Shown piece by piece: positions 4,421-28,112 of a DNA stretch of 28,337 nt; within the stretch, counting starts at the first letter, position 1, and every line of letters starts with the position of its first letter. Below the pieces are notes generated by a model. The model made no database searches, was not told where the DNA came from, and saw only the letters and a program-made list of their open reading frames with translations. The stretch lies in the sequence record NC_005872.1. One strand, written 5' to 3'. Position numbers and translations under genes: made by a program.

Positions 4421-4918
4421 CTATTTGGCTGGAGGCTCTATGTGGACTTTCCGGTTGGCTGTCAGGTATACCGTTTCATCTGTCTTTACGTAGGGCTCTC
4501 CGTAAATCATCTTAAGTAGGTGGTTTAGAAAGCTTAGGATGATTGCCGTCCTATGCGCTATGGGGATTATACTAGAGAAGAATTTTCGGGCTTGGGGGTC
4601 TTTGATTATTAGGTCGTGGAGCCTAGGGGGCGATATAAACTTTAGTTTGTTTGTCGTGACTAACCGCTCCACCTCTCTTATCATGCCGTCTACCAATTGC
4701 CGATATTGGTCCATGCTTAGGCACACCAAAGCAACGTTGCCGAATGCCACCCTAGTCACACGACCCTCTTTTTCAAGCACGTAGATTAGTGCCTTTGCCC
4801 GACCATGCGATAACCCAAGTCTTTGCTGTATTAGGGAGGTGGTTTTACAACCGTCGGCTAATAGAGCCAATATATCTCTCAGGCGCACCAAAACTTCACG
4901 CGAGTGGCCTATTGGCAT
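4421..4918 (-). CDS. Winged-helix DNA-binding protein (ORF165a-type)
   Basis: HTH CKTTSLIQQRLGLSHGRAKALIYVLEKEGRV plus wing; paralog of 4983-5480 and 27405-28112. TTTATAAA lies 28 nt upstream. Confidence 0.85.
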   Translation of the reverse strand: MPIGHSREVLVRLRDILALLADGCKTTSLIQQRLGLSHGRAKALIYVLEKEGRVTRVAFGNVALVCLSMDQYRQLVDGMIREVERLVTTNKLKFISPPRLHDLIIKDPQARKFFSSIIPIAHRTAIILSFLNHLLKMIYGEPYVKTDETVYLTANRKVHIEPPAK

Positions 4919-4982: not shown

Positions 4983-5480
4983 TTAAACAGTAGTCTGTGG
5001 CTGGTTTATACCGCTTTTTGTAACAAAATACACAGTTTTTTCTCCTTTGGTGTAGGGCTCTCCGTATAGCATGCGTAGAGCCCCATTTAGGAATGATAGG
5101 ATGGCGGCGTTTCTATAGTCTACCGGCACTAGTTTGGCTATGAGTCTGAGGACTTTGTAGTCCTTTTGGATTAGTCTGTAGAGCCTCATAGGGTATACAA
5201 ACTTCAGGTTATAGCTTTCAACTATCCTCTGTATCTCCCGGAGGATTGTGTTGACTAGGTTGTTGTATTCATCATCATTTAGGCACCACACGGCTGATTT
5301 TCCGATTTTCCACTCTCTTATGCAACCCTCACGTGCCAACGTCTTCAGTACATAGTAAGCCTCTACGTGCGTCGTGCCTAGTGTACGCATTATATAAGAC
5401 GTGGATTTACAACCGTCGGCTAACAACTCTAGCACGGCCTTTTTGCGGTTTTTCACCCTTTCTGTAATACCGGTTGGCAT
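4983..5480 (-). CDS. Winged-helix DNA-binding protein (ORF165b-type), tandem paralog
   Basis: Shares LLADGCK(S/T)TS and the C-terminal ILSFLN..L.M.YGEPY.K.(D/E).TVY with the adjacent gene. Confidence 0.85.
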   Translation of the reverse strand: MPTGITERVKNRKKAVLELLADGCKSTSYIMRTLGTTHVEAYYVLKTLAREGCIREWKIGKSAVWCLNDDEYNNLVNTILREIQRIVESYNLKFVYPMRLYRLIQKDYKVLRLIAKLVPVDYRNAAILSFLNGALRMLYGEPYTKGEKTVYFVTKSGINQPQTTV

Positions 5481-6117: not shown

Positions 6118-6381
6118 ATGGCTGAGGACCCTCTCCGTGAGTGTGTATATCAATTATACTATAATATAATCAGAACCACGGTTGGCGTCTACGTGCCGTC
6201 AAGGCTGGCTCAATGCCTAGCTGTCCTAAAGCTTCAGTTGATTTTTATCGCTAAGTCTACGGGTGATGATATTGATTTTGCCATGTCTAACTGGGGCTAC
6301 ACATGTGGCCCCAATTTCTGTGCCGTGCCGGCTAATTTCGTGGAGATTCTAGTCTACGCTAAAACGCGGTTTGGTTACTAG
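6118..6381 (+). CDS. Hypothetical protein (87 aa)
   Basis: ATG start, AT-rich box about 26 nt upstream, fills the gap between neighbouring genes. Confidence 0.7.
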   Translation: MAEDPLRECVYQLYYNIIRTTVGVYVPSRLAQCLAVLKLQLIFIAKSTGDDIDFAMSNWGYTCGPNFCAVPANFVEILVYAKTRFGY

Positions 6382-6419
6382 AGGCGTAAAATTTAAAAAT
6401 CCGCATTTCATAAGGATAC
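6381..6419 (+). promoter_or_regulatory. Core early-type promoter cassette (partial copy)
   Basis: 6381-6423 is identical over 43 bp to 21105-21147 (GAGGCGTAAAATTTAAAAATCCGCATTTCATAAGGATACATGG). Confidence 0.85.
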
Positions 6420-6814
6420 ATGGGCGCACCCAACCAACAACAAACTCAGGACAGAAGCGTGGACTTTTTCACCAATAAGATAGGCTGTAACGTGTCCAGT
6501 CCGCTTAAGCATGTGGACATAGTTGGGGAAATCGTGGAGGAGGCGGTTTACAATTTCCTCATTGACGCTGGCGATAAGATGTGCGTCGGTAACAAGATTG
6601 GGGTCTGGAAAGTGAGTAAATGTGAGGGGTCCTCAGGCTCAGGTGGTGAGAGGCGTAAATCGCTCTATGCCAAGGTGCCTAAGGGCATAGGCGTCACAGT
6701 ATATCTGGCTAATGGTAGGGTCCAAGGGAGGCTTATTGACATAGGCGTCTATGAGGTCCTTGTGGAGGTGGGGGGTGACATAATCTATATCCACAAGGAC
6801 CTAGTCTATGCGTT

Positions 6815-8250: not shown

Positions 8251-8799
8251 ATGCCTAATTTTGCCACGGCGGACATAGTCAATGATTACAATGCGCAACA
8301 GGTGTTGCTTACCAATATCGAGTGGATGTTTCTGTTTGCTTTCGTGTTGGCTGTCTTGTTTACGCTAGTTGATAGGGAGAGTAGGGCGTCAATGAGGCAC
8401 TTTCTCTCCGACTTGATGGTTAGGTGGGGCTTAGCTGGCTTGGGTCTGTGGACTATCGTGNTTATCTTCTTTGGGCTTTATGAGCTGGGGCTTCAGAGGG
8501 GCTTATTCCACTTTATCCCCTTTGTCGGTATTGCCGAATATGGGGGCGTGTGGGGCGTTGCTATCAGTGGCGCTATGGCTCTCTTATTCTTTGTGTCTAG
8601 CTTATTCCTTCAGGCGTTGATTAGGACCCCCAACGTGACTAAGGTGGTGAGGACTCCGTATTACCCCTATCTGGAGGAATACGCGCACTACCTATACCAG
8701 TGGTGGCGCTATTACCAGCAATATCAAGACTACTATCAGGCGCATCAACAAGAGGAATACGCATATGCCACCAATAGACAACGTGACAGGTCCTTTTAA
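8251..8799 (+). CDS. Membrane protein (about 3 TM) with Tyr/Gln-rich C-tail
   Basis: The track start 8167 lies inside the upstream gene; ATG 8251 lies about 27 nt after CTTAAATA. One ambiguous base at 8461. Confidence 0.75.
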   Translation: MPNFATADIVNDYNAQQVLLTNIEWMFLFAFVLAVLFTLVDRESRASMRHFLSDLMVRWGLAGLGLWTIVXIFFGLYELGLQRGLFHFIPFVGIAEYGGVWGVAISGAMALLFFVSSLFLQALIRTPNVTKVVRTPYYPYLEEYAHYLYQWWRYYQQYQDYYQAHQQEEYAYATNRQRDRSF

Positions 8800-8814: not shown

Positions 8815-9135
8815 ATGAAAACTCAAACTAGACCCAAGAAGAGGAGGCCCAAAAACCTAGAGAGGCTCTATTTGGCACCTATACGCTCCGACGGCCTTCT
8901 GGTAGTCGTGGAGGGCGGTAGGTCCTATACTAAACAAGAGATCATGTTGCGGGCTACGGCGTTTCTTAACGTCTCCGACAGGATTGAGTGTGAGATTTGC
9001 GGCCGTGTCTATGACGGCACCAACTATTTCATGGTGGAGTATACCGGCCTCTTGGACAAGCTAAGGCATGCCTATTGCGGTGATTGTAAGCCTCAAATCA
9101 AGAAGATACTAGACATCATCTATAGGCGGATATGA
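8815..9135 (+). CDS. Zn-ribbon protein (C-x2-C-x25-C-x2-C)
   Basis: CEIC...CGDC; same spacing and internal residues as 26950-27327. Confidence 0.8.
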   Translation: MKTQTRPKKRRPKNLERLYLAPIRSDGLLVVVEGGRSYTKQEIMLRATAFLNVSDRIECEICGRVYDGTNYFMVEYTGLLDKLRHAYCGDCKPQIKKILDIIYRRI

Positions 9136-17716: not shown

Positions 17717-18526
17717 ATGCGTATACCAATTCCTTTAATAATGGCGGCGGCTGTGGCTGTAGGCGCAATAGTGACTATCATTATCCAAGTCAACCTACAA
17801 GTGCTGGGGTCGTGGGATGATAGATATGCGGCTTTCAACGGCACACACGTCTACCAGACAGGTCCTATGATTTCCACGTCTTATAAGACCCTATACTTGG
17901 GCTTTGGCACGGCTACTTTCCAGAATCCGGTTTCTGTCTACTATCTAGATAAAGTAAGGAGTGGGGCGGGTGGTGGCAACGGTGACCTTGGGAAATATCT
18001 ACCGGTTAGGCTTATGGTTACCTCCGGCTCTCTGCCGACTAACACCTATCTTAAGTGGACTAATCCGTTGGTGTCTACCGACACTAGGGCAATATACCTA
18101 GTAAGCGGCACCTCTAGGGGCTATGTGTTGGGTCGGTATTATGCCTCAGGTGCTGGAGTTTGGGTGGACGTGGCTGTGCCGATATACTACAAGGTGTCTG
18201 AGTCCTCTGTGCTTATCTATCCCATGGAAAAGGCCGCCGTAAACCCAAGTGAGGGATGTACGGTGTTGAAAAACGCCGGCTCACCATTTACTAGCATCTA
18301 TAAGTACGTCTATGCCGTGCTTGATGGACAAGCTTATGATTGCTCTTACAGTAGCTGGTCCTCTACCACGGTTGGTTGGACGTCGGTGGCTTCTTCTGTG
18401 ACTAGTGCCGCCTTGTATCCCTCTCCCACCTACTACAAGGTTACGGTGAACAACGTGGATATCTATCTATCCTATTGGTATGTGGTAAACGCGGACCCAG
18501 GTTATTTTGCTGTTAAACCGGGATGA
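17717..18526 (+). CDS. N-anchored beta-rich putative virion envelope protein ('RIPIP' family)
   Basis: MRIPIPLIMAAAVAVGAIVTIIIQV leader; Tyr/Ser/Thr-rich body; TTTAAAT 27 nt upstream. Confidence 0.8.
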   Translation: MRIPIPLIMAAAVAVGAIVTIIIQVNLQVLGSWDDRYAAFNGTHVYQTGPMISTSYKTLYLGFGTATFQNPVSVYYLDKVRSGAGGGNGDLGKYLPVRLMVTSGSLPTNTYLKWTNPLVSTDTRAIYLVSGTSRGYVLGRYYASGAGVWVDVAVPIYYKVSESSVLIYPMEKAAVNPSEGCTVLKNAGSPFTSIYKYVYAVLDGQAYDCSYSSWSSTTVGWTSVASSVTSAALYPSPTYYKVTVNNVDIYLSYWYVVNADPGYFAVKPG

Positions 18527-18553
18527 CTTTAAATATTGCACCCATTTTTTAAT

Positions 18554-19381
18554 ATGCCGCGTAACTTAAATAGGATTCCGATTCCTATGATGTTGGCATT
18601 AGCTGTGGCCGTGGGCTTAGCTGTCACTATTATTATCCAGATTACTGTGTTGGCGCCTCTACCGGCTGTCGTGGCGCCTATTGAGACCTCTGCCTCTAGC
18701 CTTGACACGGGTTCTAGCTCATATACCACGTCTTTGACTGTGGCGTCGGGCTATTATGTCAACTATCCCACATTAGCTGGTCTTGGAAAGATTCAGCTTA
18801 AGGTGAACACGACGGGGTGGTATTACCTCCAGAATGACTTAGTTCTCACGGTGGCGAGGAGGAGCACGGGTGACGTAACGTTTACCCTAGGCAGTGGCTA
18901 TAAGGTATATGTGAAGGAGATTAACACCACACACGCCTTTGTGTTCTATGATGAATATTCCACAGGCGTCGTGGCTAAAAAGGTCCAAGTGGGCTCTACC
19001 GGGTGGTATATCTATCACCCAGTTACCACAAACTATGACACCACCACGGTAAACACCATTAAGAGTCTGTTAACCTCATTGGGATATACCTATGCCTATG
19101 TATTCCAGCCTAGGGCTGACTACTTGAAATTTGACCCTAGCACCAAGAGCTTCTCTATATATTTTGACTATGTGGGCAGTGACGGCACGGTTAACTTGAA
19201 ATACCACTACTTCACCAACTCCACTAGTTTCACACCTTTGCCAATTAACGCGGCGGTTACTGTCAACGGAATTGAACAAATTGACATGTACAACTACGTG
19301 CTCTATCCGACGTGGGCGCTTTTCTACTATCAAGCAACCTCTAGCGTCGAAACCGCCTTTACAATTACTCCGGTCCAGTAA
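18554..19381 (+). CDS. N-anchored beta-rich putative virion envelope protein ('RIPIP' family)
   Basis: RIPIPMMLALAVAVGLAVTIIIQIT leader. ATG 18554 lies 26 nt after TTTAAATA (the track start is TTG 18536). T6 terminator at 19382. Confidence 0.8.
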   Translation: MPRNLNRIPIPMMLALAVAVGLAVTIIIQITVLAPLPAVVAPIETSASSLDTGSSSYTTSLTVASGYYVNYPTLAGLGKIQLKVNTTGWYYLQNDLVLTVARRSTGDVTFTLGSGYKVYVKEINTTHAFVFYDEYSTGVVAKKVQVGSTGWYIYHPVTTNYDTTTVNTIKSLLTSLGYTYAYVFQPRADYLKFDPSTKSFSIYFDYVGSDGTVNLKYHYFTNSTSFTPLPINAAVTVNGIEQIDMYNYVLYPTWALFYYQATSSVETAFTITPVQ

Positions 19382-19822: not shown

Positions 19823-20268
19823 GGTTGGTTGTTGCTGGCGTGGCTCTTGAATTGCTTGACGCCTTGACAACTTTACTCATTATTTCTTTTGGGCTTGGTC
19901 GTGAGGCTAATCCGCGCCTCTTTTTTGTCAATGAGGAGCCTCTGTGGCTATTTCCGATATTTCTGGCTCAGGCGGCTTTTGTGGGCGGCGTGGGGTATTT
20001 GGCTTGGCTGGAGAAGAGGCGTGGCTACATGCGTGCCTACTATGTCACGGCTAGTCCGGTTGTTGCCTACCTAATCCATAAGTCCGTGGTGGTTGTCAAC
20101 AACGTTGCTGTGGGGCTTTTCGGCTTTGAGGGTCTTGACTATTACCTATCTGAGTTCATTAAGACCTCTATGGTGGTAGGGGGCCTTACTTACGGTATAG
20201 TTAGGGCCGTTACTCTTAAAATCCACTATAAAGCATTACATGATGTCCAATTTAAGGGAGAAGCTTAA
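19819..20268 (+). CDS. Membrane protein, DUF5658-like
   Basis: LDALTT...G.G.EANP motif followed by about 4 TMs; ATGA coupling. Confidence 0.65.
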   Translation: MRLVVAGVALELLDALTTLLIISFGLGREANPRLFFVNEEPLWLFPIFLAQAAFVGGVGYLAWLEKRRGYMRAYYVTASPVVAYLIHKSVVVVNNVAVGLFGFEGLDYYLSEFIKTSMVVGGLTYGIVRAVTLKIHYKALHDVQFKGEA

Positions 20269-20386
20269 GGAGAGGTTAAGGCGGATTCCATTGGCGCTAT
20301 TGCTCGCTTTGACAGTTGTCGTGGGGGCGTCGGTGATTATGGTGGTTCAAATTACCGTGTTGCCACCCCCAGCGGCACTTTTTTGA
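20240..20386 (+). CDS. 48-aa ORF homologous to the 'RIPIP' N-terminal anchor (below the track length cut-off)
   Basis: Manual translation MMSNLREKLKERLRRIPLALLLALTVVVGASVIMVVQITVLPPPAALF*; aligns with the N-terminus of 18554. Confidence 0.6.
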   Translation: MMSNLREKLKERLRRIPLALLLALTVVVGASVIMVVQITVLPPPAALF

Positions 20387-20400
20387 ATCGCTCTGATTCG

Positions 20401-20437
20401 GCAGTAACACTTAAAAACCCATGTTTCACTAGGATAT
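20401..20437 (+). promoter_or_regulatory. Degenerate early-type promoter core
   Basis: GCAGTAACACTTAAAAACCCATGTTTCACTAGGATAT-ATG resembles the cassette core. Confidence 0.65.
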
Positions 20438-21031
20438 ATGGCAGAAACTAAGTCTGTGGTGGCGTGGAATAGCCTATACGTGCGGGTAAAGTCTCACTCA
20501 GGGTGGTCCAACTATAGGGCGTGGGGTGACGGCACTCAATACGGCATTGAATTTAAGGGCACTACGCTTGGGTATTGGAAAGATGTCCTAAATCTCCTAG
20601 GGCGCATGGTGAGGGCTAAGGCTGAGCCTCCTAGGGAGGTGGTTAAGACGGCTAAGCTCTTATTTGAGCACGTAGAGGCTTATCTACGGCATAGCCACAT
20701 CTTTGGTGATGACTTTGTCGGCACGGCTGTGGATGTTGAAGACCCGGAGTCTCCTTACATAGACTTTACGCTATACATGGAGGTGACCACGAAACATATT
20801 GACGTGGTGGACCATATAGTGTCCGACGGTGGGGAGGACCTTGGGGAGGCTGTGCCTGGTTGGTTTGTCACTATTGCGGCTACATATGAGGGATATGACG
20901 GAGGCAATGGGGAGGGTAAGCACACGGTTAAGCGTAAGCTAGTGTTTAAGGGGCAGATTGACCGTGACGTATTGTGGCGGGAGTTCTATACAACTATTAA
21001 GCGTGCGGTTAACGCTCTGCCTTTGGAATAG
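20438..21031 (+). CDS. Paralog family member 1 (AKAEP / GYDG / AYNA family)
   Basis: Shares YRAW, RM..AKAEP, GYDG...HTV and RAVNALP with 23326, 23977 and 26068. Confidence 0.85.
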   Translation: MAETKSVVAWNSLYVRVKSHSGWSNYRAWGDGTQYGIEFKGTTLGYWKDVLNLLGRMVRAKAEPPREVVKTAKLLFEHVEAYLRHSHIFGDDFVGTAVDVEDPESPYIDFTLYMEVTTKHIDVVDHIVSDGGEDLGEAVPGWFVTIAATYEGYDGGNGEGKHTVKRKLVFKGQIDRDVLWREFYTTIKRAVNALPLE

Positions 21032-21052
21032 GGGCTTTTTTGGCCTTTATTT

Positions 21053-21143
21053 GCTTTTAAATCGGCGCGCCTTTTTTGTTTCAACTCTCCCCCTTTCTTT
21101 ACGTGAGGCGTAAAATTTAAAAATCCGCATTTCATAAGGATAC
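21053..21143 (+). promoter_or_regulatory. Full promoter cassette: box A (-91), box B (-66), TTTACG-N5-CGTAAA (-46), TATA (-28)
   Basis: GCTTTTAAAT at 21053, GTTTCAAC at 21078, palindrome 21098-21114, TTTAAAAA, GGATAC-ATG. Confidence 0.9.
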
Positions 21144-21644
21144 ATGGCTAAGAAGAAAAAGACCCAAATCCAGGAGGGGCTGGAGGCCCCTCAAAAGGAT
21201 ACTGTTTTTCCTGAGACGGGTGCGGCCCAAGGGGCCGCGGCGGCTACTCAAGTGACTATACCGGATGACGTGGCTGAGCTGATTAGAGCCACGCTTAAGG
21301 TGGCGATAGCACAACGTAAGATATATGGCCTTAGCACTACGTTGACATCATTGACTAAGACGGTGGCTAGGGCTCTGGAGAAATACATTGACGGTATACC
21401 GACGGCAACGCTTAGGGATTTCATCAAGCGTGAGGTGACGGCTATGGGGTATCCGGTTATTGAGGCTAGGGTTGACTACACGGGTGTGCCGTTTATTGCT
21501 GAGACGGTGATACTGTATAGGAACTATGAGGAGATTGTGGACATGATTAGGACAGGGCGCGCGGAGACTCTTAAGCCAGTTATTACGGGTGACGGCATTG
21601 ACCCCATATACGACAAAATGGTTAAGACGGGGTCCAATGCCTAA
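21144..21644 (+). CDS. Hypothetical protein with Lys-rich N-terminus
   Basis: Leaderless ATG directly at the end of the cassette; 166 aa. Confidence 0.85.
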   Translation: MAKKKKTQIQEGLEAPQKDTVFPETGAAQGAAAATQVTIPDDVAELIRATLKVAIAQRKIYGLSTTLTSLTKTVARALEKYIDGIPTATLRDFIKREVTAMGYPVIEARVDYTGVPFIAETVILYRNYEEIVDMIRTGRAETLKPVITGDGIDPIYDKMVKTGSNA

Positions 21645-21909
21645 GAGTATCTGGGAGCTGGAGGAGGAGGTAAGGAGGTTGTTGCTGAGCGGCGTAGAGT
21701 TCCAAGGGCGTAAGGTGGGGGCTACGGTTGGCGCGGATTGGTTCAAGTGGGTTAAGCTAGAGGAGACTAACCCCAGGCGGCTACTGGCGATATACGTAAA
21801 GGAGGCTACTATGGTTACCGTATACGCTATCGTGTCCGACGACGACAAGGTGGACATTATAAGCGTGTCACTAGACAGAATGTGTAGGGGTGGGGGAGCG
21901 CATGCTTAA
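21637..21909 (+). CDS. Hypothetical protein (about 90 aa)
   Basis: In the track frame 21589-21909; ATG 21637 overlaps the upstream stop. Confidence 0.7.
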   Translation: MPKSIWELEEEVRRLLLSGVEFQGRKVGATVGADWFKWVKLEETNPRRLLAIYVKEATMVTVYAIVSDDDKVDIISVSLDRMCRGGGAHA

Positions 21910-22288
21910 TGAGACCCCATTGGCTCAGGTGTATAGGTCGTGTATGGAGGCTGTCAATGATGCTGAGTATTGCGCTAAGGTGATTGACGTGGTTATTGAC
22001 TCCGCGAAGCGGGTGTATAGCTACGTGCCTGAGGGTCGGACTAAGCCTAAAATCTACGTGTTGTTAGCCCCAGACGTTGATTATGTGGCCGGCGTGTTGG
22101 TGGACAAGGACAAGAAGTCGGTGATTATACTACTGAGGGCGCCACGGCATGCTGTGTCATTGCTATATGAGCGTAATAAGGACGGGTGGTTCACTCTGAA
22201 GAGTGCCACGGTGTCTAACAATGAGTTGGCGGCTTTGATGAATGGGCCCTTTAAACTATCAGACAACTCTGAGGGGGATGGGCTATGA
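21902..22288 (+). CDS. Hypothetical protein (about 128 aa)
   Basis: In the track frame 21890-22288; G-rich RBS before ATG 21902; YRSC...EYC motif. Confidence 0.75.
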   Translation: MLNETPLAQVYRSCMEAVNDAEYCAKVIDVVIDSAKRVYSYVPEGRTKPKIYVLLAPDVDYVAGVLVDKDKKSVIILLRAPRHAVSLLYERNKDGWFTLKSATVSNNELAALMNGPFKLSDNSEGDGL

Positions 22289-22587
22289 GGGGGGCTGGTA
22301 ATGTCAAGATACGCATATCGGTGACTGAGCAATTGATTAGGTTCATATTGTGCCGGAGGCTTAAGGGGGCGCGTGGCAACGTCTACACGATTAAGGCCGC
22401 GCAGATATGCGCGGAAATATTCCGTGGGGAGAGTAAAGTGCCTGTGTCGTGTAAAGTGACGGTGAGGAGGTATTTGTTGGGCGCTCTATATGACGCTATC
22501 GTGCATGATTTGACGGACAAATACCGTATCGTGGTGAACGTTGGTAAGGCGTGGGAGTTGTTGGGGTGTGAGGAATATGAGGATTAG
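22285..22587 (+). CDS. Basic protein, possibly winged-helix-like
   Basis: ATGA coupling; a helix-strand-helix-helix-hairpin pattern is suggested by eye only. Confidence 0.65.
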   Translation: MRGAGNVKIRISVTEQLIRFILCRRLKGARGNVYTIKAAQICAEIFRGESKVPVSCKVTVRRYLLGALYDAIVHDLTDKYRIVVNVGKAWELLGCEEYED

Positions 22588-23068
22588 GGGCTACCTCCCT
22601 AGGGGTATTGCCTTGACGTGGTTGTTAGGTATTCCGCTGGAGGAGTGTGACGCGCCTATGACTAAGGATAAGCTTAGGGATATCATAAATCGGTTTATCA
22701 ACACCTCCTTAGGCAATGTGCCGGTGAAATATGATGTCCGTGAGCTGAGCCGCTCTTTCATGATTAAGTTCACGGCTACGGTGTCTGAGCCGGCGGCTAT
22801 GTGCCGTAAACACTCAGACTATGAGTTTAAGGATTGCGTATACACATGCGTCTCTACCAATATACCTCTACAGGAGTGTGAGGAGGTGTGTCGTCAAGAG
22901 GTGACTGAGGAGTGTAACAAGTACGGTGAGACGGCTGTGACTATGAACATAACTAGCTTGGCGCATGACATGGCGTCACTATTTGAGGCTTGTAACGTGA
23001 GGTATTATGCGCACATTGGGGCCTCTACGGATGTCTATAGCATATTATTCGTGGCCTTTTTCGCATAG
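22577..23068 (+). CDS. Cys-rich hypothetical protein
   Basis: In the track frame 22541-23068; GAGG before ATG 22577; CxxxC repeats. Confidence 0.75.
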   Translation: MRIRGYLPRGIALTWLLGIPLEECDAPMTKDKLRDIINRFINTSLGNVPVKYDVRELSRSFMIKFTATVSEPAAMCRKHSDYEFKDCVYTCVSTNIPLQECEEVCRQEVTEECNKYGETAVTMNITSLAHDMASLFEACNVRYYAHIGASTDVYSILFVAFFA

Positions 23069-23130
23069 TCCGCTTTTCGAAATCGGCTTTTTTCTTCTTT
23101 ACAAATAGCTAATGCAGCTATTTGACATTT

Positions 23131-23194
23131 CTCTAAACTTGGTTAGACATTAATCTCTCGGCGTGGTCCGGAGGACCTCCCGCTTTACCTCGGC
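23131..23194 (+). repeat. 64-nt dispersed intergenic repeat (copy 2)
   Basis: 60/64 identical to 9517-9580. Confidence 0.9.
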
Positions 23195-23234
23195 ACTCGG
23201 CGCGCTTTGGCCCCTATTTCCTATCGCTATATTT

Positions 23235-23325
23235 GCTTTTAAATAAGCGTGCTTTTTATGTTTCAATTGTCCTCCTTACTTTACGGAGGCCGTAAACTTT
23301 AAAAATCCGTGTTTCATAGGGATAC
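23235..23325 (+). promoter_or_regulatory. Full promoter cassette
   Basis: Box A 23235, box B GTTTCAAT 23260, perfect palindrome 23280-23296, ATG 23326. Confidence 0.9.
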
Positions 23326-23862
23326 ATGGTCAGGTCCAAAATAACTCCGGAGGAGGGTCCGACTAAAAAGAAGGTTTTTTTAAAGGTGAGGGCAGGTGGG
23401 GCAGAAACTGAATATACCGCGGTCTACGAGGACCTTGAAATCGGGGGGCTGACTAGGGGCGGCAGGAGTGACGTCAAGAAGGTCCTAAGGCGGATTATTA
23501 GGGCGTATAATGACCTCCCAGAGGACGTGGTTAGGGCGGCTATCACGGTGATTAACCACATATTGTCGGCTGTCAACTTGGGCGTCAAGGAGGCATGGGG
23601 TGGCGTGAGCGTAGAGGTGGGGGATAATGACAAATTGACCCTACGCATCTCCCTCTACCACTACATTGACAATGAGAGGGATGAAAGTGGTTGGGCTGGG
23701 GAGATAAAGGCTAGCTTTATCGGCTATGATGGCTTGTTTGCGGATAGCTCACACACGGTGATTAAAAGAGTCAACTACGGTGAGGATATAGACGCTATGA
23801 GCCTCTACCGTGAGTTGATTAGGGTGGCTAGACACGCTTACAACGCAATACCGTCTTATTAG
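23326..23862 (+). CDS. Paralog family member 2
   Basis: GEIKASFIGYDG...HTV and ARHAYNAIP. Confidence 0.85.
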   Translation: MVRSKITPEEGPTKKKVFLKVRAGGAETEYTAVYEDLEIGGLTRGGRSDVKKVLRRIIRAYNDLPEDVVRAAITVINHILSAVNLGVKEAWGGVSVEVGDNDKLTLRISLYHYIDNERDESGWAGEIKASFIGYDGLFADSSHTVIKRVNYGEDIDAMSLYRELIRVARHAYNAIPSY

Positions 23863-23885
23863 GCCGGAGGCTAGACGCTTAATTT

Positions 23886-23976
23886 GCTTTTAAATCGGCG
23901 CGCCTTTTTTGTTTCAACTCTCCCCCCGTCTTTACGTGGGGCGTAAAATTTAAAAATCTAGGTTTCATAGGGATAC
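23886..23976 (+). promoter_or_regulatory. Full promoter cassette
   Basis: Box A 23886, box B 23911, perfect palindrome 23931-23947. 23882-23926 is identical to 21049-21093 (45 bp). Confidence 0.9.
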
Positions 23977-24489
23977 ATGGCCCACACACAAAATACTGGG
24001 GCTGTCAAAAAAAGGAGGATTTTTTTGAACGTCTGGGGGCATGATGAATTTGAGGAGAATGACGGCAGGACCTACTACCACGCTAGAATCGGTAAGCTAG
24101 AGGTAGAGGGGTGGGCTTACTATGCGGACCGTGCCGATATCAAAAAGTTGCTGGAAAAGGCTCTAAAGGCTCAGGAGCCCCTACCGGAGAAGGTAGAGAA
24201 GGCTATTGACTCTATAGTTAACCACTTGATTGCGGTGGTCCAATTGGGCTCTACCACGGCGGCGGCACATGCTGGCTTTGACTATAATGAGAGGGAGGGG
24301 ATTAGCTTTACGGCGGAGATGTTCTATGATGATAACGGTGGGTGGGGCATGGAGGTTAGGGTGGTTAACAATAGGTATAACGGCATGATTAGGCTGGTTA
24401 AGAGGGTCCGCTTAAAGGAGGTGTCTACGGAGGCTATTCGTAAGGTGGTGGCTAAGGTGGTGCGGCAGGCTTATAACGCCTACCTTTAA
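23977..24489 (+). CDS. Paralog family member 3
   Basis: DIKKLL..ALKAQEPLP, NHL.AVVQLG and RQAYNAYL. Confidence 0.85.
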   Translation: MAHTQNTGAVKKRRIFLNVWGHDEFEENDGRTYYHARIGKLEVEGWAYYADRADIKKLLEKALKAQEPLPEKVEKAIDSIVNHLIAVVQLGSTTAAAHAGFDYNEREGISFTAEMFYDDNGGWGMEVRVVNNRYNGMIRLVKRVRLKEVSTEAIRKVVAKVVRQAYNAYL

Positions 24490-24503
24490 CAACGCCTTAA
24501 GGT

Positions 24504-24595
24504 CTTTTTAAATAAGCACGCTTTTTTCCTTTCTATTCTCCCCCCGTCTTTACGTGGGCAGTAAAATTTAAAAATCCCGATTTCACAATGATACC
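24504..24595 (+). promoter_or_regulatory. Full promoter cassette (variant)
   Basis: Box A variant 24504, box B variant CTTTCTAT 24529, TTTACG-N5-AGTAAA 24549-24565. Confidence 0.85.
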
Positions 24596-24901
24596 ATGGT
24601 GACTAAACCCCTCACGTATAACCCCAAGGAAATGAAAAGGATTTTTTCCAAAATCACGGACCCCACGGCTAGGGTAAGGGCCATAGTGGCCCACGTGTTG
24701 GCGGATATACCGGAGGCTTATGACGTGTGGGTGGGGGAGGGTGTCATAACTATTAGGCCGGTCGGCAGTGGCAGATTTATTGGTGACGTGGTGAGGCAGG
24801 TGGTTTGGTGGCTTAAGGAGTTCGGGTGGGTGGCATTGGTTAGGCCCATTGAAAACGGCTATAGGATTGAATACCTCCCAGTGGTTGGCTATGGCTGGTG
24901 A
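24596..24901 (+). CDS. Hypothetical protein (101 aa)
   Basis: Leaderless start at the end of the cassette. Confidence 0.8.
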   Translation: MVTKPLTYNPKEMKRIFSKITDPTARVRAIVAHVLADIPEAYDVWVGEGVITIRPVGSGRFIGDVVRQVVWWLKEFGWVALVRPIENGYRIEYLPVVGYGW

Positions 24902-25361
24902 CTTCGATATTAGGGAGGCTTGTCCTAATCGGGTGCGCTACCTTAATGGTGCTGTCAACGCGCTGATTTTCAAATACCCCGACGTTGACGTGGTTGACAA
25001 CGGCGTGGAACTTGGTCCATGCGTCTACCGCACGATATTTAGGATGGCTGTCTCTAATCCGGAGGACAACAAGGCCGTGGCTTTGGCTATAGCTAGGATT
25101 AATGAGTATATCCGTGACGTAAAGGCTAGGCTTGATGGCTACGGTTGGGAGATTTTCGAAAAGGAGACCTACATAGAGGAGGGCTATGTCTACGCAGAGG
25201 TTAAGTGGATGAGGCGGGTGAGGATACCGGGTAAGAAGTACGTTTCGCTTATGGAAATCTATGAGTTGGCGTTACCGCATATCGAAAAGAACCTAAGGGA
25301 GAGTGCGGAGTTTTTCGAGTTGTTGCGTGGTGGGTCTGAGGCCGTTGCGGAGGCTCAGTAA
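24891..25361 (+). CDS. Hypothetical protein (about 156 aa)
   Basis: In the track frame 24849-25361; ATG 24891 overlaps the upstream gene end with a GTGG RBS-like site. Confidence 0.75.
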   Translation: MAGDFDIREACPNRVRYLNGAVNALIFKYPDVDVVDNGVELGPCVYRTIFRMAVSNPEDNKAVALAIARINEYIRDVKARLDGYGWEIFEKETYIEEGYVYAEVKWMRRVRIPGKKYVSLMEIYELALPHIEKNLRESAEFFELLRGGSEAVAEAQ

Positions 25362-25393
25362 TTGGCGATAGGTTTTTATACGGCTATTTCTTT

Positions 25394-25708
25394 TTGATAG
25401 TGCCACGTGATGTAAAAGAAGTGACTAGGATGCTGATTAGGCTTAACATGCTTATGCGGAGGTTTAAGGAGAGGGGCGGTTATCCCATAATGTACGTGGC
25501 GGACCGCATGGGCGATAGACACGACGCGGTTGTACTTATTGTGGATATCCTCTATGAGGAGAGGGAGCGTGCTGAGGCCGTGGTAAAAGAGGTCTTGGAC
25601 CTCTTGGGGGCCCACAACATTAAGGTGNTTGACCATAAGCTTGACTCTTTCATGGTGCCTTTTAGGGAGGTGTGGCGGTTTGTGGCTATGGTGGCGGTTA
25701 ACCATTAG
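25394..25708 (+). CDS. Hypothetical protein (about 102-104 aa)
   Basis: TTTTTATA at 25373; GTG 25400 fits the TATA spacing; one N at 25628. Confidence 0.7.
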   Translation: MIVPRDVKEVTRMLIRLNMLMRRFKERGGYPIMYVADRMGDRHDAVVLIVDILYEERERAEAVVKEVLDLLGAHNIKVXDHKLDSFMVPFREVWRFVAMVAVNH

Positions 25709-25710
25709 CT

Positions 25711-25974
25711 ATGGCTATGTCGTGGCGTAAGGCTGTCCTTAATGTCGTGTTGTGTATGGCGCTTATATCGGCTGGCTTTGTGTGGTATTTCTATGCTGTA
25801 TTCTACGGAGCGGATAGCTATAGGGTCTTGGTCCTTAAGGCCGTGATGTTCTTTAGCGCTATTATCTTGGCTTTAGAGGCTGTGAGGTTTGCTATTGAGG
25901 AGGAGTATTGCATTGCGGCTTTGCTTGACGTGTGGGCTTTGCTTATGGTATTGGGGGCTGTCTTTGGGCTTTAG
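25711..25974 (+). CDS. Small 3-TM membrane protein
   Basis: Three hydrophobic segments; starts 3 nt after the upstream stop. Confidence 0.75.
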   Translation: MAMSWRKAVLNVVLCMALISAGFVWYFYAVFYGADSYRVLVLKAVMFFSAIILALEAVRFAIEEEYCIAALLDVWALLMVLGAVFGL

Positions 25975-25976
25975 TT

Positions 25977-26067
25977 GCTTTTAAATAAGCACGCTTTTTG
26001 TCTTTCAACTATCCCTCCGATTTTACGGAGGCCGTAATCTTTAAAAGTCCGTGTTTCGTAAGGATAC
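25977..26067 (+). promoter_or_regulatory. Full promoter cassette
   Basis: Box A 25977, box B CTTTCAAC 26002, TTTACG-N5-CGTAAT 26022-26038. Confidence 0.9.
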
Positions 26068-26616
26068 ATGGCCTCCCAACTAAAACCCCAAGTATTCCCG
26101 GAAAAAGAAGCCACTTTTTATGAACTAAAGGTCGGCAAGGTCTACACCAAGTATAGGGCGTGGATAGGGCCCTATATCGCTAAGGGCATAACCATGGGTC
26201 CGGAGGATAAGGTTAAGGAGGTGGTGAGGCGCATGGCACAAGCTAAGGCTGAGCCTCTTGACGTGATTAAGTCGTTGGTGGAGTCCGTGGCGGAATACGT
26301 GTCCACGGCTAGTGAGTCCGGACTAATGGACATTGGCGTGGTGTTGGGCACGTTTTTCCACTTGGGTGAGTACATGGCTATAATGGTAAAGCTACAACGT
26401 CTAAGTGGTCCGTATAGTCACAACAGGGTGTGGGGCGAAATTAAGGTTATGTTTAAGGGTTATGATGGCTTAAAGGCGTTGTCTAAGCACGTGGTGATGC
26501 GCTACGTGGAATTCTACGCGCCTAATAAGGTGGATAAGGCGCAACTATACAACGTGCTATATGAGGCGGCACGCATTGCCTATAACGCTTACGGTTGGGC
26601 CCACAAAAACCTCTAG
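26068..26616 (+). CDS. Paralog family member 4
   Basis: KYRAW, RRMAQAKAEP, GEIKVMFKGYDG...KHV and ARIAYNAY. Confidence 0.85.
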   Translation: MASQLKPQVFPEKEATFYELKVGKVYTKYRAWIGPYIAKGITMGPEDKVKEVVRRMAQAKAEPLDVIKSLVESVAEYVSTASESGLMDIGVVLGTFFHLGEYMAIMVKLQRLSGPYSHNRVWGEIKVMFKGYDGLKALSKHVVMRYVEFYAPNKVDKAQLYNVLYEAARIAYNAYGWAHKNL

Positions 26617-26858
26617 CTTAGGGCCCCAACGTCTATAGGGTCTTTTTTGGGTCCTCTTTTTCCTTTACTTTTGTCAATATGCTGCATAGTATATTTGTAA
26701 AGGGCGGGCACGTGGCTTTTTCCTAAGGGGCGCATGTCCTTTATTTGCTTTTAAATCGGCACGGTTTAGGGCCCTTTTTCTTTTTTCTTTTTAATATATA
26801 GAAATTAAAAAAGGGCCTTAATGTGCTTTTAAATCGGCGGATTTTGGGGCCTTTATTT

Positions 26859-26949
26859 GCTTTTAAATAAGCGCGCTTAGGACCTTTCAATTGTCCGCNT
26901 GTCTTTACGGGGGGCGTAAACTTTAAAAATCCGTGTTTCGTAAGGATAC
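26859..26949 (+). promoter_or_regulatory. Full promoter cassette
   Basis: Box A 26859, box B CTTTCAAT 26884, perfect palindrome 26904-26920. Confidence 0.9.
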
Positions 26950-27327
26950 ATGGCCCGGGTGGGCCCCAAAATCGAAATAACCCACGGAGGCAAAAAATAC
27001 ACGGTTTTTTCCAAAGTCACGCACTTGGTGCCGCGCACGGAAAATGGGGAGGAGGCCGAATACGTGGTATTTGGTCCGGAAAAAGAGGGCGTGATAAGTG
27101 TCGTGGTGTTGGCGCCTAAGGACCTAAATGAGGAGGCGTTGGCTTTACGTGTCAAGTGGTTCAACGACACTAAGCCACGGTGTGTCAAGTGTGGCGCGGC
27201 ATATAATGGCAAAAACCACTTTAGGGTCGTGGCTATACGCAACGGCACCTATTATCTAGACGCGGTGTGTGACAAGTGCGAGCCACGCATTACGTGGCTG
27301 TCCGCAATAGTCATTGGCAGGTCCTAA
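26950..27327 (+). CDS. Zn-ribbon protein (ORF126-type)
   Basis: CVKC-x25-CDKC; paralogous domain to 8815-9135. Confidence 0.85.
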   Translation: MARVGPKIEITHGGKKYTVFSKVTHLVPRTENGEEAEYVVFGPEKEGVISVVVLAPKDLNEEALALRVKWFNDTKPRCVKCGAAYNGKNHFRVVAIRNGTYYLDAVCDKCEPRITWLSAIVIGRS

Positions 27328-27404
27328 GGGGCCTAAATAGTCGGCTTTTTTCCGTCTATAATATCGCTTTTTTGTGGGAAAATCGGACTTTAGTGTTGGG
27401 CCTC

Positions 27405-28112
27405 TTAATTTGCTTTTAAATCAGCGCCTCCCTTACCATCTAATACGTGGCGATACTGACTTAATAGTCGGTCTATTGCCATGGTGACTAATTCGCTTGT
27501 CGTGAGTCCTAATGTCCGCGCGGCCTCTAGCATGTCATTATGCATGGCTGTCGGCACCTTAAATGTCACAAGTCTATAGGCTGACGTATAGTGGCTTAGG
27601 TTTATGTCGGCTAGCGTTGGTGCCTTTTTGCAAAATCTAGGTGTCACGTGGAATAATAACCTCCGTTGTCTCTTATCCATGGGCTTACCTAATAGGTCCT
27701 CTAATGCGGAGGCGATAAAGTGTAATGTGTGTCCGTGCGTGCTATTGACGTCTACGTATTTGGCAAATATATTGTGCGCCTCCGTGTCCGCGGCTATTAA
27801 TCTAAGCATGTCTGAGGGCGTGATATACCTCCGGCGTGAATTGCATATAAGGCGCCATAATGTACGCTTTATTTCAAATATCGCATTGGTGGCGGCATTT
27901 TCATCTACGCACCATATTGTGGCGCGGCTTATTTCGACCTTAAGCACCATTTTGTTTTTGGCTAGCTGATATAATGCATTGCGCGCCATGGACCATGACA
28001 CGTCTAGCTTATTGGCTACTCTAGCTATTGTCGTGCATGGTGCCTCCGTAATCATGTATCTTAGCGTCTTTATCATGCGCGTGTGCATTGTGTCGGACAT
28101 TTTGCGTGGCAT
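27405..28112 (-). CDS. Winged-helix protein (ORF165 family) fused to a C-terminal ribbon-helix-helix domain
   Basis: N-terminal HTH CTTIARVANKLDVSWSMARNALYQL and second domain YITPSDM...LGKP. C-terminal VTFKVP...EAARTLGLTTSELVTMAIDRLL is CopG/RHH-like. Confidence 0.8.
   Translation of the reverse strand: MPRKMSDTMHTRMIKTLRYMITEAPCTTIARVANKLDVSWSMARNALYQLAKNKMVLKVEISRATIWCVDENAATNAIFEIKRTLWRLICNSRRRYITPSDMLRLIAADTEAHNIFAKYVDVNSTHGHTLHFIASALEDLLGKPMDKRQRRLLFHVTPRFCKKAPTLADINLSHYTSAYRLVTFKVPTAMHNDMLEAARTLGLTTSELVTMAIDRLLSQYRHVLDGKGGADLKAN

Follow-up and report, generated by a model that had tools for sequence, protein, structure and literature searches.

Introduction

Single genes near the genome termini of other archaeal viruses, sharing a strong regulatory sequence that consists of a transcription factor B recognition element (BRE) and a TATA box, include known anti-CRISPR (Acr) genes (PMC11065993). 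In rudiviruses, lipothrixviruses and others, such terminal genes are small and are expressed immediately after infection, and the regulatory-sequence criterion was validated experimentally, new inhibitors having been confirmed from its predictions (PMC11065993). One of the inhibitors, AcrID1, forms a multi-copy, diversified paralog family (PMC11065993). Here we describe a family of four paralogous genes, with the promoter block that precedes each of them, in Pyrobaculum spherical virus (PSV; AJ635161 / NC_005872; Globuloviridae). The window analyzed is the complete linear genome of this virus (28,337 bp), with 190-bp perfect terminal inverted repeats at its ends, as published (PMC12662056). 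It equals the deposited genome in length and, over the 7 kb compared (positions 20000-27000), is 100% identical to it.

About 98% of globulovirus proteins are without database homologues (bioRxiv 10.1101/2020.01.16.907410). The searchable literature contains no report of an anti-defence protein or of an early regulon for viruses of Pyrobaculum or Thermoproteus, and a literature search found no PSV transcriptome. By analogy with the terminal genes described above, our best reading, which we hold tentatively, is that the four PSV genes encode non-enzymatic accessory host-interaction proteins, possibly with an anti-defence function.

Four paralogous genes in PSV

An earlier note, made by a model from the DNA sequence alone, had singled out four open reading frames (ORFs) as a diversified paralog family and as a candidate anti-defence array. 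All four are annotated PSV genes, listed here with the subtypes (A to D) of the phylogenetic tree described below and, where a structure was modeled with AlphaFold2, the predicted local distance difference test (pLDDT) and predicted template modeling (pTM) scores:

20438-21031, + strand: ORF198, annotated hypothetical gene, 197 aa, subtype A, with an extra beta-hairpin insertion (pLDDT 88, pTM 0.84)
23326-23862, + strand: ORF179, annotated hypothetical gene, 178 aa, subtype B, the hub of the pairwise similarities (pLDDT 91, pTM 0.85)
23977-24489, + strand: ORF171 (the first of two genes with that name), annotated hypothetical gene, 170 aa, subtype C
26068-26616, + strand: ORF183, annotated hypothetical gene, 182 aa, subtype D

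Their paralogy is borne out by BLASTP among all ORFs of the window, which links ORF179 to ORF183 (E 6e-17), ORF171 (E 4e-14) and ORF198 (E 1e-13), and ORF198 to ORF183 (E 5e-6). It is also borne out by phrog_20639 (annotated "unknown function"), which all four proteins match over their whole length (E 4.5e-63 to 6.9e-80). The motifs quoted in the earlier note, namely Y.A in the N-terminal strands, RM..AKAEP and its variants, GEI...GYDG...H.V and R.AYNA, can all be found in the alignment. No fifth member was found among the PSV ORFs by a hidden Markov model (HMM) scan of all ORFs or by hhalign. ORF171b, ORF167 and ORF176 were considered as diverged paralogs and rejected (hhalign probability <1% against the family profile).

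The paralogy itself is probably not new, because the genome dates from 2004, gene duplications in PSV are reported in the ICTV profile (PMC12662056), and PHROGs already groups all four proteins. What this analysis adds is the unmatched fold model, the division into six subtypes, the patchy distribution and accessory status of the family, its occurrence in further Pyrobaculum elements and as ankyrin fusions, and a cross-genome definition of the promoter cassette regulon.

The promoter cassette

As had been proposed, every one of the four paralogs stands alone in a unit headed by a regulatory cassette. The cassette is ~105 nt long and ends at the ATG, and PSV has seven full copies of it between 20.3 and 27.0 kb. 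Together with one half copy, these were detected by nhmmer over PSV at E values of 6e-11 to 2e-30:

20332-20440, + strand: cassette before ORF198 (E 5e-20), the most diverged copy, retaining the BRE/TATA and start region
23225-23328, + strand: cassette before ORF179 (E 4e-29)
23875-23979, + strand: cassette before ORF171 (E 9e-30)
25965-26070, + strand: cassette before ORF183 (E 2e-28)
21041-21146, + strand: cassette before ORF167, heading the five-gene unit ORF167-91-129-101-176 (21144-23068), not family members
24493-24598, + strand: cassette before ORF102, heading the four-gene unit ORF102-171b-105b-88b (24596-25974), not family members
26847-26952, + strand: cassette before ORF126 (26950-27327), a second cassette-driven multi-copy family
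6375-6422, + strand: promoter-only half copy before ORF137, lacking the upstream half, ~15 kb from the array

An almost gap-free alignment of 38 full copies from six genomes gave the block order, 5' to 3': CTTTTAAATcGGCGCGC, a T-run, TTTCAAyT, TTTACG, GTAAAA, TTTAAAAA, TTTCAtaaGGATAC, ATG, GC. GTAAAA directly abuts TTTAAAAA, and the BRE/TATA and start region are conserved in all copies. The TATA box TTTAAAAA occupies -28 to -21 relative to the ATG, 20 nt before it. The archaeal BRE consensus is RNWAAW, to which GTAAAA conforms, and an archaeal TATA box is usually centred ~26 nt upstream of the transcription start. Because of the position of the TATA box, transcription should start at or beside the start codon and yield a leaderless mRNA, a type of message common in Pyrobaculum. 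Judging from the BRE/TATA consensus alone, the promoter would be a strong one. PSV thus displays the two sequence features by which anti-defence genes were recognized in other archaeal viruses (PMC11065993): a single or first gene behind a predicted strong promoter (GTAAAA and TTTAAAAA at the same distance from the ATG in all copies), and a regulatory sequence common to such genes within one genome.

The cassette is not specific to the family, since it also heads the ORF167-ORF176 and ORF102-ORF88b operons, ORF126 and, in half form, ORF137. In the six genomes, 48 genes are headed by a full cassette or its promoter half; 22 of them are family members, and the others include 8 ORF126-like genes, 6 heads of the ORF167 operon, 6 heads of the ORF102 operon and 3 members of a family of ~100-aa proteins. 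The promoter half or more lies upstream of 22 of the 24 family genes, and the two exceptions directly follow another member. Because the same cassette drives conserved operons, it appears to mark a right-arm regulon, the genes of which may be co-regulated, rather than the paralog family. The order of the units differs among genomes at cassette boundaries, and 6381-6423 (before ORF137) is identical to 21105-21147 (before ORF167) at 43 of 43 positions. The latter identity suggests recent copying or gene conversion, and the two observations together suggest recombination between cassette copies.

The G+C-rich distal box CTTTTAAATcGGCGCGC and the T-run probably terminate the preceding unit and/or bind a regulator. 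Three consecutive occurrences of the distal box (TTTGCTTTTAAATCGGC...) lie upstream of ORF126 (26738-26769, 26814-26839, and 26847-26880), and a further one lies just past ORF126, at the 3' end of ORF236 (27403-27428). A hairpin inside the cassette, formed by the C-rich block with the G-rich block before the BRE, was considered and rejected, as it is not backed by covariation: 69% of cells were paired vs 67.5% in shuffles, 50 of 500 shuffles scored as high, and slid registers of the putative hairpin scored alike. Upstream of cassette copies there are two unusually long intergenic stretches (23069-23224 and 26617-26846), both carrying the short repeat CTTTTTTCTTyTTTAmAaATAG (at 23087 and 26780), which has no Rfam match; no Rfam family was found in the window. 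The window contains five ambiguous bases (N, at 8461, 14333, 16483, 25628, and 26899), of which one falls within the cassette that precedes ORF126 and another within ORF105b.

Distribution, subtypes, and selection

A word-indexed search returned 47 relatives. The HMM search beyond PSV that the earlier note had proposed was run exhaustively against 1.84 billion cluster representatives and found only 44 clusters, and all of those traced belong to hot-spring metagenome assemblies or metagenome-assembled genomes (MAGs) of Pyrobaculum. A scan of the IMG/VR viral contigs returned no relatives, and a collection of phages and archaeal viruses held none at the sequence level. PSV-like contigs hold 2-7 members each (e.g., L002/L020, L004, L010, L012, L013/L014/L022, and L029).

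A maximum-likelihood tree split the family into six subtypes, well supported and each on a long stem with short tips: A (198-type), B (179-type), C (171-type), D (183-type), E, and F. The repertoire is ABCD in PSV, ABCE in L002, ABED in L014, BFCED in L004, and all six with a second B in L029; subtype B was present in every PSV-like genome examined. Orthologues of ORF198 are 51-67% identical and occur in L002, L014, L010, L012, and L029, the L002 orthologue of ORF171 is 88% identical, and orthologues of ORF183 were seen in L004, L014, and L029 only. At L004:5155-5304, after an inserted 281-aa ORF, there is a 50-codon C-terminal remnant of subtype A (62% identical), which is direct evidence that this subtype was lost in the L004 lineage. 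A metagenome variant of ORF198 (P0001) is 98% identical and lacks the four residues TQYG from the loop that joins strands 2 and 3.

Between PSV and its close relative L002, the ratio of nonsynonymous to synonymous substitution rates (dN/dS) is 0.16-0.26 for the family genes, 0.18-0.46 for other right-arm genes, and 0.05-0.27 for ORF317 to ORF150 upstream of the array. Gene-wide positive selection is rejected for the family in this comparison. Because of the shape of the tree, the patchy repertoires with the remnant, and the dN/dS values, we conclude that the subtypes are ancient, that each is dispensable on its own, and that purifying selection acts on every one of them. The earlier note had read the locus as "amplification plus divergence". 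The locus does hold diversified paralogs in a terminal genome arm, each behind a consensus BRE/TATA block of its own, but it shows neither recent amplification nor a visible arms race, given six ancient subtypes with such low dN/dS values.

The three other globuloviruses, PSV2, TTSV1, and TSPV1, gave no family match by HMM (best E 0.83) or tblastn and no cassette match, whereas VP2 finds all three, being common to these viruses and PSV. Because the family is absent from viruses that share VP2, it does not belong to the virion or replication core of globuloviruses, and the genome arm that carries it is accessory. Detection as virion structural proteins had been named in the earlier note as an outcome that would speak against its proposal; the four proteins are neither conserved virion proteins nor among the annotated virion proteins VP1-3. 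This bears on the idea that they are minor virion or host-range proteins (e.g., parts of the surface protrusions), the variants serving different hosts. PSV does infect both Pyrobaculum and Thermoproteus, its virions bear protrusions (PMC12662056), and a variable repertoire is typical of host-range determinants. We nevertheless consider this explanation improbable, given that the proteins have no signal peptide or transmembrane segment for anchoring in the envelope, are missing from the VP1-3 set and from the other globuloviruses, and have relatives in elements that are not globuloviruses.

These relatives are distant members located in other mobile elements, again usually as adjacent pairs. 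L015, which was binned as Pyrobaculum, carries a family pair together with a ResIII helicase and an AAA_21-type ATPase, and L008, a contig of 62% GC, carries a pair overlapping stop to start. Ankyrin-repeat proteins are abundant on contigs L007 and L016, and two representatives are fusions with N-terminal ankyrin repeats (L007:99-1502 and L016:36-1007; P0064 and P0061; also P0068). Such fusions point to protein partners. Some distant members have long acidic C-terminal tails. In L007, a stand-alone ankyrin protein lies beside the family members. In L016, a 379-aa call (1483-2622) appears to be a family domain with a tail of ~190 low-complexity residues without a Pfam domain, and is possibly a miscalled ORF.

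The main rival to a host-interaction role is a single lineage-specific, hetero-oligomeric viral complex (e.g., a scaffold, a chaperone, or a genome-handling assembly), in which the paralogs would work together as subunits. Every sufficiently long contig examined has at least two members, the distant elements hold adjacent pairs (L008, L015, and L007), subtype F always stands right after B without a cassette of its own (L004, L010, and L029), subtype B is universal in PSV-like genomes, and each subtype is kept under purifying selection. The surface conserved across subtypes (RRM..A, EPP, GYDG, and AYNA) could be the interface. However, repertoires that vary between close relatives and the decay of subtype A in L004 are unexpected for obligate partners, each gene has its own promoter in PSV, the family is absent from three other globuloviruses of the same virion type, and the ankyrin fusions point to outside partners. 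Taken together, we regard a single complex as rather unlikely.

Protein properties and predicted fold

The four proteins are of 19-22 kDa, with isoelectric points of 5.7-9.4 and zero cysteines. They have no signal peptide and, by a 19-residue hydropathy scan, no clear transmembrane segment; the top value was 1.6 (ORF183), and the stretches concerned were modeled as beta strands. Pfam yielded no domain and the PDB no sequence match for the family, and the PADLOC defence-protein library matched only the ankyrin part of one fusion protein.

The AlphaFold2 models of ORF179 and ORF198, built with family alignments, are confident and have a common topology. After a disordered N-terminal tail of ~12 residues come three beta strands and then two helices; four long beta strands follow, and the closing C-terminal helix ends in AYNA. 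The ORF198 model has an additional hairpin within the second sheet half, and the hairpin in the four-stranded beta meander is subtype-specific. All subtypes keep a Tyr and an Ala in strand 2, the RRM..A that closes helix 1, the EPP and GYDG loops, a Trp, a His, and the AYNA at the terminus, and they differ most from one another in strands 1, 4, and 5 and in the beta5-beta6 hairpin.

Foldseek searches of the PDB with the two models returned nothing below E 1e-3, with template modeling (TM) scores of at most 0.34. In BFVD the sole real matches were the four PSV proteins themselves (TM 0.76-0.97), followed by the entry D9CG76 (174 aa) at TM 0.49 and E 2e-3. The known Acrs (AcrID1, AcrIIIB1, AcrIII-1/DUF1874, and other solved Acrs) showed no similarity in Pfam, PDB-sequence, or Foldseek searches (E < 1e-3, two models). 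A clear enzymatic fold was the other outcome that the earlier note had counted against its proposal; there was neither a Pfam domain nor a match to an enzymatic fold. On the strength of these searches, the fold is treated as unmatched, with no sign of an enzyme.

Both PDB lists were headed by START, StARkin, PYL, and Bet v 1 proteins, which raises the question of whether the PSV proteins are START/Bet v 1-like ligand carriers, binding a lipid for envelope acquisition or acting as a sponge for a small signaling molecule. The beta3-alpha-alpha-beta4-alpha order of their secondary-structure elements is indeed that of the helix-grip (SRPBCC) domains, and PSV is enveloped (PMC12662056). The matches, however, are non-significant (E 4e-3 to 0.1), with TM scores of 0.12-0.34, rmsd (root-mean-square deviation) values of 12-20 Å and no superposition, and there is no Pfam START/SRPBCC profile match. 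Moreover, PSV2, TTSV1, and TSPV1 belong to the same enveloped family (PMC12662056), yet lack the paralogs. We therefore do not treat the modeled family as a member of the START/Bet v 1 superfamily, and a carrier function seems to us very unlikely.

A possible host-interaction role for the family

How would accessory host-interaction proteins of this kind work? The four genes encode soluble, cysteine-free, single-domain proteins of ~20 kDa without a recognizable enzymatic site, and each gene would be transcribed alone, as a leaderless mRNA, from its own ~105-nt block, as part of an accessory regulon in the right arm of PSV. The proteins may be binding modules with a common scaffold and variable surfaces, such that each subtype would act on a different host component. 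Counter-defence would be the most likely purpose, by analogy with the promoter-linked anti-defence genes found near the ends of other linear archaeal virus genomes. We rank a host-interaction or anti-defence role first because PSV has both sequence features used in PMC11065993 and is not covered there.

A narrower form of this proposal is that the proteins are a new-fold anti-defence family of Thermoproteales mobile elements, with six subtypes that each neutralize a different immune component and a cassette that allows recombinational shuffling between genomes. By the same analogy, the targets could be parts of type I-A or type III CRISPR-Cas, or other systems. As a joint claim, including these targets, we find it doubtful.

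Several points weigh against a host-interaction role. The functional claim rests on analogy, and proteins of 170-200 aa are above the size of most Acrs. The subtypes are old, constrained (dN/dS 0.16-0.26), and evolve no faster than the neighbour genes. Two operons that are conserved throughout the PSV-like genomes also lie behind the cassette, so that it may simply be the right-arm promoter. Because PSV infection is chronic and non-lytic (PMC12662056), a sharp "early" class may be absent in this virus. The published method down-ranks genes with a predicted transcription start beside the start codon (PMC11065993), which is the arrangement predicted here. Finally, elements nearly always have at least two members, some of them overlapping stop to start, which fits the subunits of one complex as well.

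Neighbours of the array

ORF126-like proteins (PF22425; PDB 2X5R) are a second multi-copy family behind the same cassette, as single genes. Eight cassette-headed copies occur in the six genomes, three of them in L002 (12099-12479, 12591-13001, and 14419-14799), and PSV has a paralog of ORF126 without a cassette, ORF107 (8815-9135). The ORF126/ORF107 family resembles the four-paralog family in its cassette, its single genes, and a copy number that varies among PSV-like genomes, but it is unrelated in sequence, and its crystal structure was phased by single-wavelength anomalous diffraction from zinc (Zn-SAD).

Three winged-helix genes are among the few minus-strand genes of PSV:

27405-28112, - strand: ORF236, winged-helix protein (PF22376, FaeA-like), adjoining the cassette array
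4421-4918, - strand: ORF165a, winged-helix paralog of ORF236 (PF22376)
4983-5480, - strand: ORF165b, winged-helix paralog of ORF236 (PF22376)

They are paralogs by BLASTP (E 2e-44 and 1e-13) and, we infer, candidate regulators, ORF236 possibly of the cassette. Elsewhere in the genome, ORF270 (17717-18526) and ORF282 (18536-19381) are 65% identical over their N-terminal 26 residues (E 2e-6) and may be a further duplicated pair.

Implications and comparison with known systems

The analysis provides a set of candidates that lends itself well to testing, in a virus family about which little is understood. It consists of a protein family of six subtypes, confidently modeled and lacking a structural relative, of a second family, the ORF126-like one, and of a sharply conserved promoter block that defines a regulon. 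If the anti-defence function is true, the rule that regulatory sequence predicts anti-defence genes would extend to a new virus family and a new host order, and a new inhibitor fold would be added. If the proteins instead form one complex, the paralogs would point to a stage peculiar to this lineage in the life cycle of a virus that is otherwise little understood.

Compared with the AcrID1 family of rudiviruses, the PSV family is likewise diversified, multi-copy, and near a terminus, and the AcrID1 genes are mostly behind a shared early regulatory sequence. The two families are without sequence or structural similarity, and the PSV proteins are of 170-197 aa. The study of promoter-linked clusters (PMC11065993; Bhoobalan-Chitty et al., 2024) covered Rudiviridae, Lipothrixviridae, Bicaudaviridae, Fuselloviridae, and a few MAGs, and PSV and Globuloviridae are unmentioned in its text and supplements. 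Early expression is documented for SIRV2. The PSV block also differs from the published clusters in being longer, with a distal box, in its conservation across several genomes, and in heading conserved operons. In the remaining respects the two are alike: single genes lie near one terminus of a linear genome, a virus-specific BRE and TATA sequence is shared among them, the proteins are orphans, and a gene for a winged-helix regulator (in PSV, the candidate ORF236) is located nearby.

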